A stretch of DNA of 64,000 nucleotides, from sequence record MW749003.1; one strand, 5' to 3'. Below are positions 2,356 through 44,300 of the stretch, one piece after another. Made by a program: the position numbers and the translations under genes. The notes under the pieces are model-generated. The model was not told the DNA's origin. It worked only from the letters and a program-made list of their open reading frames with translations, and ran no database searches. Each line of letters opens with the position of its first letter. The stretch's first letter is position 1.

Positions 2356-3254
2356 GGGATTTACATTTAATTAAATGGTCATTAGCGGGAATGATTAGAT
2401 TTGAGGATTTATGTTTTCCTCAATTTGATAAAACTTATGAAATTATTTTTACTGATGGTTATGTAGAATTAGTTTTTGAACGAAAAAATAATTTTATTAC
2501 ATTTAAAGTACCTGTTGGAATTAAATATGGGAAGCCTTATCTTTCTAATGAATTAAAAAAAGAAATACAAGAAAGAACTATTACTTATTATTATAAATAT
2601 GTTAATTGTCTAAAAAGAGATGAATATTTAGATTATAGGAATAAATATCTACAAAATAAAAATAATAAAGTAGCTATTTTAAGAGATTCTAAAAAGTTAA
2701 AAGTATATGCTAATTACGAAATATCTGAGAAAGAGTTTCTAAATATTAGGCGAGAAAGAGTGAAGATTAAGGATTTTCTCAAGGAGAATATATGTGAAGT
2801 TTGTGGTTCAAGAAACTTATTAACTAGATTCAATAGACACAATTTATGTAATAAACATTCAATACAAGTTGAATTTAAAGAATATCATAGTTTAGATGAT
2901 TTAATAAAGGAAAATAATAAATTAAAATGCCATTGCTGTAATGAAGATATTTTAAAAACTGATCTTTATATGAAACAAGATAAAGAAGCGAAAGAAAATA
3001 TCGCATCGCCAATATTCACTATATTTCATAATACGGATCCACTGGATAAAGATTTATATTATTGTGATCAATGTAAAAGAAAGTTTAATGATAAAATAGT
3101 TGAAAATATTGTTAAACGGTCAGAAATATGCAAATGTAAGGAGTGTAATGGAAAAGGTTACGAAAGAAATTATTATGTAGAAAAAGAATTCTGTGAAAAA
3201 TGTAATGGTAAAGGATGGGTTAAGAAGAAGGGAGTAAATAATGAAGTACAATAA
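2352..3254 (+). CDS. paralogue family A protein with C-terminal DnaJ-type Zn finger
   Basis: HLIKW motif; CKECNGKG...CEKCNGKGW; ATGA overlap with upstream gene. Confidence 0.6.
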   Translation: MRDLHLIKWSLAGMIRFEDLCFPQFDKTYEIIFTDGYVELVFERKNNFITFKVPVGIKYGKPYLSNELKKEIQERTITYYYKYVNCLKRDEYLDYRNKYLQNKNNKVAILRDSKKLKVYANYEISEKEFLNIRRERVKIKDFLKENICEVCGSRNLLTRFNRHNLCNKHSIQVEFKEYHSLDDLIKENNKLKCHCCNEDILKTDLYMKQDKEAKENIASPIFTIFHNTDPLDKDLYYCDQCKRKFNDKIVENIVKRSEICKCKECNGKGYERNYYVEKEFCEKCNGKGWVKKKGVNNEVQ

Positions 3255-3687
3255 TACTTTAGATAGATGGAGACATTTAATTATTTGGGATTTTGAAGAT
3301 GTTATGAAATTTGATTCAAAAATACCAAAGAGTATTAAATATAATCATCAAGACACTGACTTAATAATTCTGTATGAAGTAGTTCTAGCGGAAGAGTATA
3401 TTGAGTTTATCTATAAAACCAATGATAAATTTAGATTATCAAAAATTATTCCACCTATTAAGAATAATAAAATAAAATATACAGAGGATTTCTATGATAG
3501 AATGTTAGCATGTACTCATCCTTTTTATACTGTTCCTAATACTAAAATATTGATCAAAGATGAATATGATAAATATAGATTAGAACTTATGAATAATTTA
3601 AAAAATAAAGTTATATTATTATCATATAACTCAGAAAGGATGAAAGTATATACAAATTATAAACTATCAGGATTGGAGGAGATTTAA
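3241..3687 (+). CDS. paralogue family A protein lacking the Zn-finger half
   Basis: HLIIW and NKVILL...KVYTNY shared with the two upstream genes. Confidence 0.5.
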   Translation: MKYNNTLDRWRHLIIWDFEDVMKFDSKIPKSIKYNHQDTDLIILYEVVLAEEYIEFIYKTNDKFRLSKIIPPIKNNKIKYTEDFYDRMLACTHPFYTVPNTKILIKDEYDKYRLELMNNLKNKVILLSYNSERMKVYTNYKLSGLEEI

Positions 3688-3834
3688 GATCAGTTAGAAA
3701 AATATATAGTTATAATGAAATATAATATCTTAAAACGAATAGATGATGATAAATTAATCATTAGTTATGATATTACACAACTAATGATTAGTGAGAATAA
3801 TCATATTTAAAAATACATGTAAAGGATGATGAAA

Positions 3835-6800
3835 ATGGCAATTATTAAGAAAGATTATGAAACTATTCAAACTGAAAATGCTACAGAATATTATGATGAG
3901 GTTTTAAAGGAACGTGCTATTCCAGATCCTCGTGATGGATTAAAACCTATTCACCGCAGAATTCTATGGGGTATGCATGTACATAAATGGGAATCAAATA
4001 AACCGCATGTTAAGTCAGCAAAAATTACGGGGAGCATTATTGGTAAACAGTAGTTTCATTGCCTATCAATTATGATAGAGTATATAACTTAGCAATGAAA
4101 TTCTTGCCGTCTTAAGTGGTAACATTTAAGATTATTAATGGGGGATTAAGCTGGGAGGGTTTAGTTATCCTGATCAGAGTCCGAAGGATAAATGTAATAA
4201 TTTATTCAGGCGCAACGCATAGATTGCTGAAACTTCACAAGATGAAGAATATAATGTATCCACGAGACCCCATTAACCGTCTATTGTGAAATACATGGTT
4301 AAAAAGATATGCTATGCTGAGTTGGAAATGACCAACTGATGAAAATGAGGGAAACCTCCAGAGCATAGGATAAAAAGCCTATGGTTAATAACTAACAGGA
4401 ATATCATCCCCACGGAAATGCAAGCGTATATGAAGCACTAGTAAAAATGTATCAACCTTGGTATGTCAATAAAAGCCTTATTGATGCTCATGGTAAGTAA
4501 AATCCTTTAATATTATATGAATACCGTCATATAATAGATTAGGCTCGTTAAAGGATATGCCGTTTTGTATGGTAACATACATCATTATTACTGGGGGATT
4601 AAGCTGGGAGGGTATAGCCTATCCTGATCAGAGTCCGAAGGATGGATGTAATAGTCCATTCAGGCGCAACGCATAGATTGCTGAAACTTCACAAGATGAA
4701 GAATATAATGTATCCAAGAGACCCCAGTATCCATCTATTGTGAAATACATGGATAAAAAGATATGCTATACTGGATTGGAAATGACCAATCGATGAAAAT
4801 GAGGGAAACCTCCAGAGCATAGGATAAAAAGCCTATGGTTAATAACTATTAGAACTTTGGAAGTGTGTATGGGGATCCAGCCGCCGCTGAACGTTATAGT
4901 GAAGCTAGAATCCATAAATTTGCAGAAGAGGTTTTACTTTCAAATATTAATAAAAACATTGTTGATTTTGTTCCAAACTTTGATAATACTTTAGAAGAGC
5001 CAAAAGTATTACCTTCTATTCTTCCAATGATATTAGTTAATGGTAGTCTCGGTATTGCCGCTGGTTATGCAACCAACCAACATCCACATAATATTAATGA
5101 AGTTATTGATGAGACTATTAAGTATATTAAAGATAATAACTATCAAATCAAGCTACTACCAGATTACCCAACTGGTGGAGTAATTATTAATAAAAGGCAA
5201 GTAGAAGAAGCATATACTACTGGTAAATCAAAGGCTATTATTAGAGCAAGAATTACCAAAAATGAAAAGAAACATGAATTAGTTATTAGTGAGATTCCAT
5301 ATCTAAAAACATCTGATAAACTAATTGAATCTATTCAAAATGTAGCTAATGATAGAATTGAGAAAGGTAATAAGATTCCTAAGAAGATTGAAGGAATTAA
5401 GAATATTAAAAACCTTTCAGAGAAAGGTAAAATTAATATTATTATTGAAGTAAAGAAAGGTTATGAGCTAGATTTAATTGAAAATCAATTATATAAATAT
5501 ACTAATTGTCAATTTACTCTACCAATGGACTTTAATGGAGTAATAGACAAGAAGTTTATTAACTTTACTAACGTCAACCAAATTGTTGCAGAATGGTTAA
5601 ATTTCCGTATTGTTACTCTTAGACGTTTATTTACAAATGATCTTAAAGATGCTAAGAAGAGAATTCATATTATTGATGGATTACTTACTGCGTTAGGTAC
5701 TAATCTAGATCGTTTGTTAGATATTATCAGAACTAGTAAAAGTAGATCGCAAATGGTTGAAACTATTGTAAAAGAATTTAAAATTGAAGAAGATCAAGCT
5801 GAATATATTGTAAATATGAAATTATATCGTATTAACAATATTGAAATTGATCAATTGAAAAAAGAAAGAAAAGACTTAGAAAAGAAATATAACGATACGG
5901 TATTATACTTTAAAGATGATAATAAGATTAATGAGTATATTATCTCTGAACTTGAAAATGCTAAGAAAAAGTTTGGTTGTGAACGAAAAACAACTGTTCT
6001 AGATTTAAATATAGAAGATATTAATAATAAAGAAAATCTTATTATTGACAGTAACCATACTTTCATTTGTACTAATCGTTATATTAAGAAATTAAATAAT
6101 ACTATCAAAGTTCAAAAACGTGGTGGTAAAGGAAATAGTATTGGTAAGATTAAATCTGATGATAATCCAATTACTATTTTTAATGCAAATAATAAGGATA
6201 ATATTCTTATTTTTACGAATGCAGGAAAAGTTTATTCAAGAAAAGCTTATGAGATTGAAGGTTGTGAAATCCAATCATATGGCTATAATCTAAATAGTAT
6301 TATTAAAGATGAAACTCTAACAAATGTCCTTGCAATGACAGATGATGAGATGAATAATGAAAATATCAAAATTGCAATTGGTACTAGATTGAATAAAATT
6401 AAACTAGTGGATGTAGCAGAATTTAAGAATATTTATCAATCAGGTATTATTGCAACTAAATTAAATGATGGTGATAGTGTTATCTTTGCTCAAAAAGTAG
6501 ATATGAAAGGAAAGAATTCTATTATTGCTTGCACTAATACAGGAGCAACAATTAATATGTCACTTGACTCTATCCCAGTAGTTCTTCGCCCTACATTTGG
6601 TTCTAATATTTTTGATAATTCTATTATTAATAAAGGAGATTATATTGCTGGTATTGATCTAGTAACAGAAGAAGTATCACATGCTTTCTTTATTAGTAAA
6701 AAAGGATTGGGAAAACGAGTTGAAATCTCTGAGTTCCCTGAACAAATCCGTGGTGGTAAAGGTCGAATTGGAATTAGAGCAAAAGAAAATGATGAAATTG

Positions 6801-6967
6801 TGAGAATTGTTTCTGTTAAACCGGATTCTGATTTAACCATTATTAGTAATACTAGTATTATTGGAATGGACATTGATGAAGTAAGTGTATTACTCCGTCC
6901 AGCATTTGGTAACACTATTAAGAAATTAAATAAAGATGAGATTATTTTGGGAGCAACCGCTATTTAA
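3835..6967 (+). CDS. gyrA: DNA gyrase subunit A, spliced (exons 3835-4044, 4399-4494, 4853-6967; about 806 aa)
   Basis: RAIPDPRDGLKPIHRRIL; spliced junctions IIG|EYHPHG and DAHG|NFGS; catalytic AAAERYSEAR; GyrA-box QKRGGKG. Confidence 0.95.
4045..4398 (+). mobile_element. group I intron, no ORF (gyrA intron 1, 354 nt)
   Basis: exon ends GGU; P1 ggt/gcc with U.G pair; terminal G4398; P7-like GCAUA/UAUGC; removal restores frame. Confidence 0.92.
4495..4852 (+). mobile_element. group I intron, no ORF (gyrA intron 2, 358 nt)
   Basis: exon ends GGU; terminal G4852; core nearly identical to intron 1; removal gives HGNFGS. Confidence 0.92.
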
Positions 6968-30042: not shown

Positions 30043-33000
30043 ATGTCATTTTTTAAAGGTATTCGGAACATAGAAAGAGTTCAATATGATCTAGTGCAAT
30101 ATTGTGACAAGGAATTTGTTCCAAAATTTATAGCAAGTCAAAATATTGATGAAGATAAATTATACGATACTATTGATTTTAGTTTACAGTTAGCTGAAAA
30201 ATTACATTTAGATTATAATATGTGTTTCACTATTGCAGTAATGCATGATTTTGGTTATATTGAGGAAGATGAAAATAATTTTAATACATTAATGAGCATA
30301 AAAGCAGATCAATTTTTATTGAGATATTTTGATGGAAGTCAAATGGAAATTATTGAGTCTGCTTGTAAAGAACACGATGGTACAAGTAGAGAAACAGGAA
30401 TATTTACATCTTTATATTCAAAGGTTATTGCAGATGCAGATAGGATGTCAATATTAAGAATTGAAGCTATGATTCGTCATTATTGGAAATTCTATTCTAG
30501 TCAAAAGGCATTTTCTAATACAGATGAGCGTCCTAATAAACTAACAGATAAAGAAATTTTTGATAAGATGTATAGTTTTCTTAAAAAAGAGTATGGTACA
30601 ATTGTATCAAAAAATAAATTATTGTTAGAAGCATCAAGAGAAATGATGAAAGATGAAATAGAGAATTCTAATAAAGTATTAAGCTCTGAAGAAGACACAA
30701 AAAGAATGGTTCTACATTTAGCTACTTATGGGGAAATCCAAATAAATAATGATGGAACGCTTACCGTAGAAAAAATAACTAAAGAGCCAATCAGTGAATC
30801 AGATCCTTTTGAATTATTTGAAAAAAATATAAAAGAATCAGTAGATGAACAACTACTAGAAGCCGCACCAAAGAATCTATCAAAGAGACAAAAGGTAGAA
30901 GATTTAATATATAAGGTACTTTCAGTTTTAGATGATACTGGAGCTAACTTGAGAAAATATAAAGAGTTCTTTGGTAAAATGAACGATGAACAATTTGATA
31001 GATATATGAAAAAATTCCTAAAAGATGAAGATGAAAATTTTTATCTTGAAATTTTACCTAATAAAAGTGAACCTTCATTAAAGCAAATTAAAAAAGCACT
31101 AGATATCTTAAAAGTACCAACTGATGAATATGTATATCTTCGACATGATGGTCATAAAAATGATCCTATTAGAACTGCATATAAAGTACCTGTTGGTTAT
31201 ATTACAATTAAGCGGGTACAACAGATCCTAAGTAAAAAGAATACTTATTCTCTTGATATTGCACAAAGAAACATGAAATCGGGTTATAATTGGCTCTCCA
31301 TTATAGCAATATAATGGCAAACACTCTCCTTAATTTCTGGGATATCCTAATTTTTAGGACAATCAGAAGCGAATTTGAATAAAAACCTAATATTCAAAAC
31401 GTTCAACGACTATCCGAAAGCAATCATACGATTGTGAGTAGCGGTGAAATTCCGCAATAGGAGTACGGCTCAAGCTATTGGAGTGGGTGAGAATCCCTTA
31501 AATGGAAACAGGAGGTATCCTTAACGGATAAAGATATAGTCTCGTCTCTATGGTAACATAGAGCAGTTCATAAGAGAACGCAGTAGATGTAGCGAGTCTA
31601 CTGGAAGATACGCAAGTTACAGGTAATGACAAAATTGCCAGAATATCTGATATTGAATCATATAGTCTTGTTGCTATAGGAGCTGATAATGCTTTAAAAG
31701 AATTCCTTGGACCACGAGCTAGATTATTGGCTCGTAATTTCCTTAATTGCTGGAAACTCCTTAGAGCTTATTAGACCACAACGTGACTGGTAACAGTGAG
31801 CGTGAAGGTTATAAGAACTAATAAGATTGGACAATCAGCAGCTAAGCTTTTATATAATTCTTTAAAAGAGCTGACAATGCTAAAACAAAAATATATTTAA
31901 ATTTAGTGTTGGAGGTAATTAAATTTTATGCCTAGAAGAAAAAGCAATGAGGAATTTATGAATGAAGTTATAGAGTTAGTAGGGGAAGAATATACATTTT
32001 TAGAGAAGTATGTACGATCACTGACTAAAATAAAGGTAAAGCATAATATTTGTAATAATATATACATGGTTACTCCTAATGATTTCCTAAATGGTGGAAA
32101 AAGATGTCCTAAATGTACTGTTCAAAAAATGGCTGATCGGTCAAGAATGACAAATGAGGAATTCATTAATAGAGTAAAAAAAGTAACTAAAAATGATTAT
32201 ACCTTTCTAGAAAAATATAATGGTACTAATAACAATTTAAAAGTAATTCATAATATTTGTGGATATAAATATTGTGTATCACCTAATAATTTCCTAAATG
32301 GTGGAAAAAGATGTCCTAAATGTGCTAATAATATTAAAAGAACAAATAAGGAATTCGTTAATGAAATTAGCAAATTAGTAGGAGAAGAATATACTTTTTT
32401 AGATGAGTATATAAATACTGATACGCCTATAAAAATTATTCATAATATTTGTGGTCATAAATATAAAACTTCCCCTAAAGAGTTTATTCATAGAAATTCT
32501 CGTTGTCCAAAGTGTAATTTTCTTAATAATGAATCTTTCTTTTCTAAAGTTATAAAAAAGACATTAAATGAATTAAATATTTATTTTATTCAAGAATATT
32601 CTATTAGAGAGTTGGGTAAAGGTAAAAAATTTGATTTTTATATACCTAGTTTAAACCTATTAATAGAGTATGATGGTAGCCAACATTTCTACCAAAAATT
32701 TAATGATAAAAATGGTTTCTTGTCACAGATAAAAAGAGACCAAGAAAAGAATGATTTTATAAAAAATAGTGAATACACTTTGATTAGAATAAGTTACAAA
32801 ATCAATAAAAACCTAGACATAATAATTAAAGAATTAATAAAAGAAAGTTCAACGACTATCGAAAAATATAATCTATTATTAATTAATAAAAATAATGTAG
32901 TAAATTTTAACAAATATTACAAGAATGCTAATATTAATTATTTTGATTATATTAAGTAGAGTACCCTACAAGCTATTGGTAGTATACTTCTGGGATGAAG

Positions 33001-41381: not shown

Positions 41382-44300
41382 ATGGATGACATCAGTGTAA
41401 TTAAGAATGAAGATTATGAAGGTTCACATAGATTTTTAGCAGAGGAATTACTAATGCCTAATGCAAATAAAACAGATGGTAATAGATCTACAATGTTCTG
41501 CTCTCACTTAGCACAGGCAGTAACTCTACAAAAGGCTGAACCGCCATTAGTCTATACTAACTTTGAGAATCAAGTTGGAAAGTATTCAACTGCAGGTTAT
41601 AGAAAGGCTAATAGTAATTATAAGGTTATTGAAAAAATTTATAAGAATGATTATAATTATGTACTTATTGTACAAGATCAGGAAACTGGGGAATATACAC
41701 TATTTGAAAGAGCTGAATGTGAGTTTTTAACTGAACATTATGGTTTTCAATGGGATAATGATAAAATTGATTCATTAAAGAAAGATGATACAATTGAAAA
41801 AGATACTGTATTATATAAGAATACCTGTTATGATGAAAATATGAATTTTGGTTATGGTGTTAATTTAAATGCTGCATATTTTAGTTATAAGAATGAAACA
41901 TTAGAGGATGCTATTGTAATCTCTGAAAGTGCCGCTAAAAAGCTAGGAACATATAGTGTTAACAAAGTAAAAGTATCTGTCAATACAAATGATATCTTGC
42001 TTAACCTATATGGTGATAATGAGAACTATAAAGGATTCCCAGATATTGGAGAACATATTAAAAATCAGATTATTGCTAGCCGTAGAAGATTTGATTATAA
42101 CACTGCATTATATGAATTAAAGAATCTAAATGAAATGAGAGATTCAGATACTCCATTCTTTGCTGATGGTAAGATTGTAGATATTGAAATTTTCTCTAAT
42201 GTACCTGAAGAAGAATTAAAAGTACAGAAGTATAATGAACAAGTTCTATACTATATTAATAAACAAAAAGAATTTTCTAATAATGTTTATCAAAAACTTA
42301 AAAAGATTGTAGAAGATAAAGATAGTAACATTTCAGACAAGCTATTGCACTTCTATAATAATTGTAAAATGAGAATTGATGAAAATATTTCTTACACTTA
42401 TCAGAATAGTAAGTTTAGTGGTTTTATTATGGAATTCACAATTTTAGAGGAAGAACCATTAAATAAAGGAAGTAAGATTACAGGTAGATATGGTAATAAA
42501 GGTGTAATTAGTAAAATACTCCCTGATGATCAAATGCCTACTGTGGCTGAAGGACGTTTTAAAGGACTCAAGGCAGACATTTGTCTTAATCCTCTTGGTG
42601 TATTTAATCGTTTAAATTTAGGCGATTTAAAACTCTCTTAATTGCTGGAAACTCCTTAGAGCTTATTAGACCACAACGTAATCGGTGACGATAAGCGTGA
42701 AGGTTTGAAAACTAATAAGATTGGACAATCAGCAGTTATTAGGCTTAATTTTTAAAAATCCTCCACAATTAAATGAACAAATAAATATGAATTATTCATT
42801 TTAGGGGGGATTTTATGAAAAGAAAAATTTATAATGAGGATATTATTTCTAAAGAAGTTAGTATAATTAATCCTGAATATGAATATGTTAAATTAATAAA
42901 ACTAAAAGGTGTTCATTCAAAAATATTGATCAATCATAAAACATGTGGTAGAAATATTGAAATTATTTTCAATAACTTTAAAAATGGTAGAATCTGTAAA
43001 TATTGTAGTAAGAATTGTATAGATGAGAAATCTTTTAGAGAATTAGTCAAAGAAGATACCGACTATATTTTTGAATCATTTATTTCAATGAATAAAAAAA
43101 TGACTGTAACACATAAAAAATGCAGATATGTCTATGAAGTAAGACCATCAGATTTTGTCTATAATAAACATAGGTGTCCAAATTGTTCCAATCGTATAGC
43201 ATATACTGAAAAAACTTTAAGTAAAAAAATAAAAAGCATTGATTCAGAATATGAGATGATAGAAACAATTGATGGCTCTGGAGTAAGATCAAAAATAAAA
43301 TTAAATCATAAGAAATGCAATAAATCCTTTCAACTTATTGCAAGAAACTTTTTGATTAATAATCAAAGATGTCCATATTGTTATAGTAAAAGGATGTTTA
43401 ATCCGTCATTTGATTCTAAAGGAATTAAAAAGATAAAAGAATGGCTGGATAAAGAAGGATTTAAATATGAAACTGAAAAAACTTATGATGATTTGATTTC
43501 TCCATTCTCAAATAAGAAATTAAGATTTGATATTTTTCTACCACATTTAAATACACTGATTGAATTTGATGGAAAATTCCATTTCAAGTATAGTAACTCT
43601 AGTAAAATATTCTCCAAAGAAAATTTAGAAAAAACTAAAATTAGAGATGAAGTCAAGAATCAATATTGTAAAGAAAATAATATAACACTTTTAAGGATTA
43701 GTTATACTGATAATATTCATTATAAATTAGATAAACATTTTAAGTCTAATAATTCAACGACTATCGAAACCACTCTAGCAGATCATAGTTAGAAGGAAGG
43801 GAGTAGAGTACAGCCAAGCGGTAGAGGTATTCCGTAATAAGGTTATAATTCCTCTTTAAATGGAAACAGAGAGTTAATGAAGATATAGTCTCATCTCTAT
43901 AGAGATATAGAGCAGTTCATAAGAGAACGGCATGAAAGTAGCGACTTCATGTGAAGACAATGTGAATCCAAGTCAGTTAATAGAACAAGAATTAAACTGG
44001 ATTGCTAAATTCATTAGAAAAGATATGGAAGAAGCAGGAAGTAATGAAGAAAAAGTTAGCATCTTACTTGATTTCTTAAATAGAGTGAATAAAGAAGAAA
44101 CTGAATTAATGGAAGAATTCATTAATAGTCTAAATAAAACAGAATTAGAAGAGTTTCTAAATGATATTATTGAAAATGGAATTCCTATCTGTCAAAAGCC
44201 ATTCTTCGGTAATATTGGTTTAGATGAACTTTGGGAATTATATGATCATTATAACCATATTGATTACTTTAAATGTGAGGGAATTAGTACTCCTTTAATT

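Follow-up and report, generated by a model that had tools for sequence, protein, structure and literature searches.

The gyrA gene of Internexus, the phage of the window analysed here (64,000 nucleotides of sequence record MW749003.1), is split by two closely related group I introns, which we call A and B. Internexus is an AR9/PBS1-like Bacillus jumbo phage. We consider it highly probable that both introns are removed by group I splicing, in the steps set out below, and that both are what remains of homing introns with a LAGLIDADG endonuclease gene, since lost. For this we determined the intron boundaries, the fold, the colinearity of the exons, the distribution of the introns in relatives, and the mosaic pattern of the introns.

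A gyrA gene in three exons

Internexus is 99.3% identical to AR9 over positions 3826-5400, and exon 1 starts where AR9_g044 starts. We assign the gene as follows.

3826..4044, + strand: gyrA exon 1; 73 codons, ending ...ATT GGT; PF00521 positions 1-42
4045..4398, + strand: intron A; 354 nt, ORF-less group I intron with 3' end AACAG and terminal G at 4398
4399..4494, + strand: gyrA exon 2 (micro-exon); 96 nt, 32 amino acids, EYHPHGNASVYE...DAHG; PF00521 positions 44-75
4495..4852, + strand: intron B; 358 nt, ORF-less group I intron with 3' end ATTAG and terminal G at 4852
4853..6967, + strand: gyrA exon 3; 704 codons plus stop, beginning NFGSVYGDPAAAERY; PF00521 positions 76-432, and PF03989

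The joined exons are colinear with the Pfam family PF00521 and have the C-terminal repeats of PF03989, as expected of GyrA. Removing both introns gives the joins GGU|GAA and GGU|AAC and an 809-amino-acid GyrA, in which the catalytic-tyrosine motif (AAERY) and the C-terminal beta-propeller are both encoded by exon 3. Exon 2 aligns to residues 76-107 of 875-residue GyrA chains (such as 6rks), which we take to be E. coli numbering. By this alignment, exon 2 corresponds to the GyrA helix in the quinolone-resistance region, as a sequence-only reading of the window had proposed. That reading was right that there is a micro-exon, but its exact limits had to be corrected to 4399-4494, with intron B beginning at 4495. 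It had also noted that skipping exon 2 would preserve the reading frame, which follows from the exon's length of 32 codons; a protein made from the skipped transcript would be missing the HPHG motif and the DNA-gate helix. gyrA is an early gene.

The two-intron, three-exon gyrA is already annotated and published for AR9, so the locus itself is not new. In the AR9 record (KU878088), g044 is a three-piece join whose outer coordinates equal those in Internexus; between the two phages the core of intron A and that of intron B each show 99.7% identity, and we see no difference of substance. A passage of Korn et al. (bioRxiv 10.1101/2020.12.14.422802) states that two introns disrupt AR9 gyrA, and the same source, where it discusses this, points to experimentally determined mature mRNAs of AR9, citing Lavysh et al. 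2016; for splicing in AR9 we rely on this literature. The earlier impression that group I introns in a phage gyrA are not well described was thus mistaken. The comparison with AR9 that had been proposed as a check shows that relatives do carry the same two annotated introns, which removes the novelty and leaves the call standing. As a discovery the locus is therefore minor: the GenBank record of AR9 has shown the two-intron gyrA since 2016, and later papers cite it. The record of Internexus annotates neither the introns nor the micro-exon. The gene is annotated as fragments in Internexus, in two PBS1 records, and in Goe21, BpSp, and the Yersinia phage phiR1-37, and the junctions given here could mend the annotation of gyrA in such records.

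Fold and group I identity of the introns

Introns A and B are, by their modelled fold, group I introns of the phage IA type, and self-splicing is predicted from this fold. The call made from the sequence alone is upheld by the fold, by covariation, and by the boundary rules. The helices of intron A (+ strand) are listed here with P1 of intron B.

4041-4044 (exon) / 4106-4109 (internal guide sequence): P1 of intron A, with an extension at 4054-4062 / 4092-4100
4110-4118 / 4123-4131: P2, with a GUAA loop
4136-4143 / 4268-4275: P3
4151-4154 / 4174-4177: P4
4156-4160 / 4167-4171: P5
4181-4182 / 4209-4210: P6
4186-4193 / 4200-4207: P6a
4217-4221 / 4308-4312: P7
4222-4227 / 4256-4260: P7.1
4233-4237 / 4243-4247: P7.2
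4276-4284 / 4291-4299: P8
4315-4316 / 4396-4397: P9.0
4320-4325 / 4332-4337: P9
4347-4350 / 4355-4358: P9.1, with a GAAA loop
4364-4369 / 4378-4383: P9.2
4491-4494 (exon) / 4559-4562 (guide sequence): P1 of intron B, with an extension at 4502-4510 / 4548-4556

Intron B has the same architecture, shifted by about 453-454 nt, and a 10-bp hairpin lies inside its P1 loop. A minimum-free-energy fold regains most of the helices of intron A (z = -4.26). As had been claimed, both introns in the Internexus genome are ORF-less: neither contains an ORF of at least 60 amino acids, and stops interrupt every frame of both.

The two introns are about 91% identical over their full alignment and 90.5% identical over a 294-nt core. 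A repeat search pairs copies of 229 nt (93% identity) and 60 nt (83%), and two blocks, 4204-4262 (59 nt) and 4338-4394 (57 nt), are identical in A and B; both shared blocks had been noticed before. Most of the 28 differences in the core belong to nine fully compensatory pairs and three G-U/A-U switches. Compensatory changes occur in P3, P6a, P9, P2 (two pairs), P8, and P9.0, and the three examples quoted in the sequence-only reading are those in P3, P6a, and P9. Its idea that the A/B pair is itself a source of covariation evidence holds.

More than 100 phage loci form a covarying family that supports the group I fold. In an alignment of 17 members, 87.9% of cells are paired, as compared to 36-45% if the partners are slid, and both sides change in 52 of 74 pairs (15 helices, 17 members); none of 500 shuffles matched the observed values. 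P7 covaries over the family (47/51, 20/20, and 11/11), and of 70 loci, 59 have a compatible 2-bp P9.0 (27 ± 3 for shuffles). The long extension of P1 is maintained by compensatory changes in A, B, phiR1-37, BpSp, and the family loci L053 and L058. Covariation thus supports the P3/P7 pseudoknot and the P4-P6 domain that make up a group I core. We considered two further pairings and rejected them: a helix of UUAUUAA (between P2 and P3) with UUAAUAA (near the 3' end) is broken without compensation in loci L040 and L057, and a long-range GGAU/AUCC pairing was dropped for the local, covarying P6a helix.

The assignment to subgroup IA is based on the P7.1/P7.2 arm between P7 and the 3' strand of P3, on P9.1 and P9.2, and on the lack of P5abc; within IA the architecture is presumably IA2 of the Michel-Westhof scheme. 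By eye, in the alignment of relatives, P7.1 is formed by at least five distinct pairs of complementary sequences, and P7.2 is either covarying or cleanly deleted (in three members). The automatic pair count, from an alignment in which these arms are misaligned, scores P7.1 and P7.2 lower.

At the boundaries, TGGT precedes both insertion sites. The exonic UGGU, which ends in the GGU codon that precedes both introns, pairs with the guide core GCCG common to A and B, with a U-G wobble at the 5' splice site; for intron A this U is the last base of exon 1. Both introns end in G (G4398 and G4852), and short complementary stretches, judged by eye, could form a P10 in each. In the predicted mechanism, the U of the glycine codon GGU would wobble with a G of the guide UGCCG in P1; free guanosine would attack the 5' splice site; and the freed exon would then attack behind the terminal G, which would be held by the 2-bp P9.0.

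Rfam's model RF00028 does not match A or B, whether the gathering score is applied or E-values up to 10 are allowed, and scans of the whole window gave no group I match. The introns annotated in AR9 g078 do not match it either. Because the introns of T4 td (40.3 bits) and nrdB (35.7 bits) also fall below the threshold of 50, we treat the negative result for A and B as uninformative. Phage variants of such introns may escape generic models (PMC11878797). RF00028 misses this family of more than 100 phage introns, recognised by an exact 19-nt P9.1 motif, which is a potential seed for a better model.

The window contains other introns as well, which have the classical element AAGAUAUAGUC (exact copies at 31531, 33044, and 43880). 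We could detect no relation between these introns and the gyrA pair, and nhmmer profiles identify A and B as the only family members within the window. The two had indeed been described as a lineage apart, with a P7 correctly read as GCAUA/UAUGC. However, the sequence of P7 does not mark a lineage: among loci with the exact 19-nt P9.1 motif, a single family holds GCAUA/UAUGC, GCGUA/UACGC, and GACUA/UAGUC, each with its matching partner.

Could the inserts be something other than introns, with gyrA a pseudogene interrupted by repeated junk DNA, or with inteins or frameshift sites? The Internexus and PBS1 records do list separate CDS and small "hypothetical proteins," and there is no Rfam match. 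But each insert has stops in every frame, which excludes inteins; the three coding pieces follow PF00521 in exact order, with no loss of profile positions; at the boundaries a U precedes the 5' site and the 3' end is a G, as the rule demands; and structural covariation is strong. Furthermore, site B is empty in Goe21 and BpSp, whose exons are continuous exactly at the predicted junction, and mature AR9 mRNAs are reported in the passage cited above. We give this explanation next to no chance; it is effectively refuted already.

Origins of introns A and B

We propose that A and B are orphaned leftovers of homing introns whose LAGLIDADG gene formerly lay in the P1 loop; the order of events we infer from the relatives. 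Intron A would have been resident at G|(E/K/R)YHPHG, and its endonuclease gene would have been deleted in the AR9-type lineage, leaving a scar. Intron B would belong to a related lineage that targets HG|N(F/N)G, 32 codons downstream of site A. DNA-level recombination would have brought it into the AR9/PBS1 lineage, or spread it there, together with a short stretch of foreign exon, and its endonuclease gene would have been lost as well.

Orthologues of intron A are found at the same gyrA junction in Goe21, BpSp, and phiR1-37. The Goe21 intron contains a 335-amino-acid LAGLIDADG ORF (Goe21_00560; positions 2715-3722 of locus L002; Pfam LAGLIDADG_3) between the same P1 flanks, and phiR1-37 carries a 38%-identical endonuclease (E = 2e-64). 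The BpSp intron has no ORF. Across the core, intron A of the window is 77% identical to the BpSp orthologue and 72% identical to that of phiR1-37. A search of AR9, PBS1, and Internexus with tblastn (E ≤ 1e-8) found no homologue of the endonuclease. Same-site orthologues thus bear a LAGLIDADG gene, and presence and absence vary among relatives, as expected for a mobile intron. A and B contain no intact endonuclease gene, and all that is left of coding sequence is a C-terminal remnant in A.

4063..4109, + strand: putative deletion scar in the P1 loop of intron A, left by a lost LAGLIDADG endonuclease gene; from comparison with Goe21

Within this scar, a short hairpin (4063-4068 / 4073-4078) occupies the place of the Goe21 ORF. 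On its 3' side are about 12 terminal codons of the ORF, which span the 3' strand of P1 and the guide sequence, and the TAA stop of the remnant lies within P2 (4113-4115). On these comparisons intron A is an old resident, and its copy in the window bears what we read as a deletion scar.

Intron B was seen in AR9, PBS1, and Internexus only. In a metagenomic locus (L053), precisely site B is occupied by an intron whose LAGLIDADG gene is a pseudogene, interrupted by an early stop; its product shares 33% identity with the Goe21 enzyme (E = 9e-31). This single locus is our sample of the site-B lineage: searching IMG/VR with two degenerate patterns gave chance matches, an AR9-like contig, and L053, and no further site-B introns. 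(The 3' end ATTAG was considered as a marker for site B and rejected, as introns in unrelated genes end in the same way; it is half of the covarying P9.0 pair.) By hand count, the first 20 nt of intron B and the flank formed by its P1 3' strand and guide are about 75-86% identical to L053 and about 30-58% identical to A. The segment from the guide to P2 is 62% identical to A, which is level with unrelated family members. In contrast, the P3-P8 core of B is 89-94% identical to A and 61-70% identical to L053.

The exon next to intron B is unusual as well.

4853..4865, + strand: 13 exon bases directly 3' of intron B; candidate co-conversion tract

Eight of the 32 exon differences from Goe21 fall within 14 nt at junction B (position 4494 and 4853-4865), and there are none in the 134 nt before this cluster. 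The AR9-type flank reads AAC TTT GGA AGT GTG, while the flank in BpSp is of the Goe21 type (AAT TTC GGx TCA). Since the outgroup BpSp, which lacks intron B, has the Goe21-type flank, the AR9-type flank is derived and travels with the intron. This cluster of differences may be a co-conversion tract.

The sequence-only reading had suggested a duplication or transposition into the second site without an endonuclease of its own: that is, B would have arisen recently by copying of A, itself ORF-less, to a place 96 nt downstream, for instance by reverse splicing into mRNA at the second UGGU followed by reverse transcription and recombination. The cores of A and B are far more similar to each other (90.5%) than A is to its orthologues in BpSp or phiR1-37, TGGT precedes both sites, the guide core GCCG is shared, and AR9-type genomes have no endonuclease homologue. 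Nevertheless, we find such a copy improbable. Reverse splicing copies the entire intron, yet about 60 nt at the start of B and its P1 3' strand are unlike A, and its P1 region is nearer to that of the endonuclease-bearing L053; the ORF-deletion junctions of A and B also differ. Reverse splicing would leave the flanking exon unchanged, yet the eight exon differences cluster at junction B. Outside the P7.1/P7.2 arm, moreover, B is no nearer to A of the window (28 differences) than to A of Goe21 (27, both read off a table). Taken with the LAGLIDADG genes in orthologues of A, these observations speak against the suggestion, and by sequence comparison B has the look of a decayed homing intron, not of an endonuclease-free copy of A.

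Because B is equidistant from the two A introns, it predates the split between AR9 and Goe21. This age is also compatible with another explanation: that the ancestor of the AR9/Goe21 group already had B, and that Goe21 lost it by a precise recombination with a cDNA or an allele without the intron. The difference cluster at junction B does indicate recombination there, and does not by itself give the direction. But BpSp, without B, has the Goe21-type flank, which makes the AR9-type flank the derived one, and we regard ancestral presence with loss as unlikely. (Within the P7.1/P7.2 arm, A and B are identical and Goe21 intron A departs at 12 positions. We considered recent gene conversion between A and B on this basis and downgraded it, because the Goe21 arm may itself have been replaced.)

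Returning to B as a decayed homing intron, its core is like that of A and its P1 module is not, so either A and B recombined or they share a more recent ancestor of the core. We tentatively raise the idea, without favoring it, that B is a natural chimera, in which the P1/guide module would come from the lineage homing to HG|N(F/N)G (represented by L053) and the core would have been homogenised with A. If this were true, concerted evolution of tandem group I introns would leave their targeting modules distinct.

Comparison with other phage introns

The split gyrase A of phiR1-37 (g327, g328, and g329) has the same codon junction as intron A and a LAGLIDADG ORF in the same P1-loop position. Unlike Internexus, phiR1-37 has an intact 311-amino-acid endonuclease ORF and no intron at site B. 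(Its record gives three separate CDS and no intron feature.) One intron/LAGLIDADG family has a hotspot in phage gyrA, where it hits three or more neighbouring codon junctions within the most conserved part of the gene.

The introns of T4 td and nrdB, which are the IA2 archetypes, are likewise phage group I introns in genes for nucleotide or DNA metabolism, with endonucleases that have decayed to varying degrees. In T4, the intron endonuclease genes lie in loops other than P1, and the enzymes are of the GIY-YIG and HNH types, whereas the gyrA-type enzyme is a LAGLIDADG protein encoded in the P1 loop, and its gene is fully deleted in Internexus. Neither nhmmer nor BLAST found sequence similarity between the td or nrdB introns and the gyrA introns. 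The endonuclease of the nrdB intron, I-TevIII, is defunct and is mobilised in trans by mobE (PMC2790892).

Staphylococcus phage Twort resembles the gyrA pair in having several related group I introns in one phage gene, separated by short exons, but the gene and the host are different. The Twort introns are ORF-less. Where PMC3073962 discusses Twort, it describes three similar group I introns in one ORF (citing Landthaler and Shub 1999) and transcripts that lack one exon, which is a precedent for the idea that the gyrA micro-exon could be skipped.

In another jumbo phage, PhiPA3, the intron-encoded endonuclease gp210 interferes with co-infecting PhiKZ (PMC11620839). As in the homing that we propose, the target of gp210 is a related phage's allele without the intron. 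Its type (HNH nickase, against LAGLIDADG in the gyrA family) and its host gene (an RNA polymerase gene) are different. One possibility, by analogy, is that the orphaned introns are kept because an occupied site would be immune to the LAGLIDADG enzymes of co-infecting relatives such as Goe21. Goe21 (with the endonuclease and without B) and AR9-type phages (without the endonuclease and with B) form a test pair in B. subtilis 168 that is suited to questions of homing, site immunity, and exon skipping.

The split gyrA gene

The gyrA gene of Bacillus phage vB_BspM_Internexus (Internexus) is divided into three exons by two inserts, introns A and B, whose insertion junctions we call sites A and B. 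Boundaries were taken from the sequence.

Pieces of gyrA in the window
3826-4044: gyrA exon 1, 3' end GGT
4045-4398: intron A, 354 nt, last base G
4399-4494: gyrA exon 2, 96 nt
4495-4852: intron B, 358 nt, last base G
4853-6967: gyrA exon 3

The introns align at 91% identity, with repeat pairs of 229 nt (93%) and 60 nt (83%), and neither contains an ORF of at least 60 amino acids: all frames are closed. The three exon pieces cover positions 1-42, 44-75, and 76-432 of the Pfam profile PF00521, so nothing is lost at the gyrA junctions. The boundaries, the alignment, the closed frames, and the colinearity with PF00521 confirm the sequence-only reading, which described twin ORF-less inserts around a 96-nt gyrA exon. 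The two identical blocks that it noticed are also present, with lengths of 59 nt and 57 nt (4204-4262 and 4338-4394 in intron A). Exon 2 aligns with residues 76-107 of GyrA chains with 875 residues (e.g., 6rks), which we take to be in E. coli numbering and to span the helix of the quinolone-resistance region.

The same reading considered introns in a phage gyrA to be little described, but this group I intron pair is already known from the close relative AR9. AR9 and PBS1 (genus Takahashivirus) are 99.3% identical to the window over 3826-5400, and Internexus is 100% identical. The annotation of AR9 g044 (gyrA) joins three pieces, and its outer coordinates match ours. Korn et al. (bioRxiv 10.1101/2020.12.14.422802) describe AR9 gyrA as disrupted by two introns and cite the mature mRNAs of AR9 as experimentally determined. 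The Internexus record instead has two separate gyrA coding sequences and omits the micro-exon, and gyrA is similarly fragmented in the records for PBS1, Goe21, BpSp, and Yersinia phage phiR1-37.

Group I fold and intron family

Both inserts are phage IA-type group I introns. We built a fold model by hand, with an extended P1, P2, P3, P4, P5, P6/P6a, P7, P7.1/P7.2, P8, P9.0, P9, P9.1, and P9.2. The P7.1/P7.2 arm and the P9.1/P9.2 helices are present and P5abc is absent, which we take to be the phage IA (IA2-like) architecture of the Michel-Westhof scheme. The exact 19-nt P9.1 motif GAAAATGAGGGAAACCTCC occurs at more than 109 IMG/VR loci, and these loci form a large phage intron family. Across 17 full-length members of this family (alignment A2), 87.9% of cells pair as modeled, versus 36-45% if the partners are slid by 1-3 columns; 52 of the 74 pairs have changes on both sides, and none of 500 shuffles reached the observed values. 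In the wider family, P7 covaries (UAUGC with GCAUA at 47/51 loci, UACGC with GCGUA at 20/20, and UAGUC with GACUA at 11/11), and a 2-bp P9.0 directly before the terminal G is compatible at 59 of 70 loci, versus 27 ± 3 when shuffled. For intron A alone, the minimum-free-energy fold recovers most of the model helices (z = -4.26). The claim that the two introns provide their own covariation proof was right, and understated: among the 28 positions that differ in the 294-nt core are 9 pairs with full compensation (two each in P2, P6a, and P9, and one each in P3, P8, and P9.0).

The Rfam model RF00028 does not match introns A or B, even at E ≤ 10, and this miss says little. In a control, the td and nrdB introns of phage T4 fell short of the 50-bit threshold, at 40 and 36 bits; the annotated AR9 g078 introns in the same window were not matched by Rfam either; and the same weakness of such models was reported for phage introns in 2025 (PMC11878797).

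The fold is most plastic in the P7.1/P7.2 arm. About 36 nt are inserted into this arm in intron A of BpSp (L114:3640-3690), and family members L083, L088, and L029 lack P7.2. Another locus (L080:4466-4759; IMG/VR UViG_2558309133_000003) combines a P3 5' strand of the L005/L024 type with a 3' strand of the L067 type, and these two cannot form P3. This locus may be a recombinant of two neighboring family members, or the combination may be an artefact introduced when the nhmmer hit was joined.

Origins of the two introns

Intron A is a long-standing occupant of its site. In Goe21, it carries a 335-aa ORF (a match to Pfam LAGLIDADG_3) between the strands of the P1 extension. Intron A in the window retains the flanks of this ORF and its last dozen codons, the scar of a deletion. 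BpSp carries intron A at this junction without the ORF. In phiR1-37, an intron at the identical junction shows 72% identity in the core and carries a LAGLIDADG ORF with 38% identity to the Goe21 enzyme (E = 2e-64). Goe21 also has three extra small ORFs just upstream of gyrA (Goe21_00520 to 00540; L002:1235-2485) that are absent from AR9 and Internexus; the 208-aa ORF here has no Pfam match.

Only AR9, PBS1, and Internexus have intron B; the exons of Goe21 and BpSp continue across site B. On the metagenomic phage contig L053, site A is empty and an intron lies precisely at site B (..IDWHG|NNGN..). The LAGLIDADG gene in that intron shares 33% identity with the Goe21 enzyme (E = 9e-31) and is broken early by an in-frame stop, 12 codons in (minus strand; 4259-4297 on the reverse complement). 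This gene is probably in decay, as one would expect midway between homing and loss in the cycle of such introns. By hand count, the first 20 nt of intron B and the 3' strand of P1 with the flank of the internal guide sequence are about 75-86% identical to the L053 intron and about 30-58% identical to intron A. From the guide to P2, intron B is 62% identical to intron A, no better than unrelated family members, while from P3 to P8 it is 89-94% identical to intron A and 61-70% identical to L053. Intron B is thus a mosaic. Outside of P7.1/P7.2, intron B has 28 differences from intron A of the window and 27 from intron A of Goe21, and these two copies of intron A differ at 10 positions; this near-equal distance implies that intron B branched off earlier than the divergence of AR9 from Goe21.

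How did intron B arrive? The sequence-only reading proposed duplication or transposition into a second site without an endonuclease, and no homologue of the LAGLIDADG endonuclease remains anywhere in the AR9-type genomes (AR9, PBS1, and Internexus) at E ≤ 1e-8. However, the L053-like P1 region argues otherwise, as do the exons. The exons of Internexus and Goe21 have 32 differences over 863 nt; 8 of these crowd into a 14-nt stretch at junction B, with none in the 134 nt before this cluster. Since BpSp has the Goe21-type flank, the AR9-type flank is derived and moves with intron B. The cluster looks like a co-conversion tract from DNA-level homing. It is more likely that intron B arrived by homing of its DNA, driven by a LAGLIDADG endonuclease whose gene would later have been lost, and that the neighboring introns A and B then recombined.

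Gyrase hotspot and other introns in the window

At HPHG|DSSVY, a third junction located four codons downstream from site A, introns of the same family also interrupt phage gyrase/topoisomerase IV A genes (L060 and L090, and by eye a similar junction in L103). This region of phage gyrase is an intron hotspot. Exon skipping is on record for phage Twort (PMC3073962), whereas for the gyrA introns it is only a proposal. A product without exon 2 would be missing both the HPHG motif and the DNA-gate helix, so we would expect it to be inactive.

Profiles of the gyrA intron family matched only introns A and B in the window. The other introns have the classical AAGAUAUAGUC element and no sequence-level relation to the gyrA pair, so the proposed separation of the pair holds, but P7, on which it had been based, is insufficient alone as a lineage marker: three P7 types occur within one family. 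Exact copies of AAGATATAGTC at 31531 and 33044 lie inside the homologue of AR9_g078, a gene that is joined from three pieces and comes with the homing endonuclease g079; these positions fit the two annotated g078 introns. This classical group I "S element" also occurs exactly at 43880, after the end of an ORF and within the stretch annotated in AR9 as a tiny hypothetical gene (g090), which directly follows the non-virion RNA polymerase beta gene (g089). The region 43780-43960 looks like part of a group I intron that lacks annotation, either its 3' half or a remnant.
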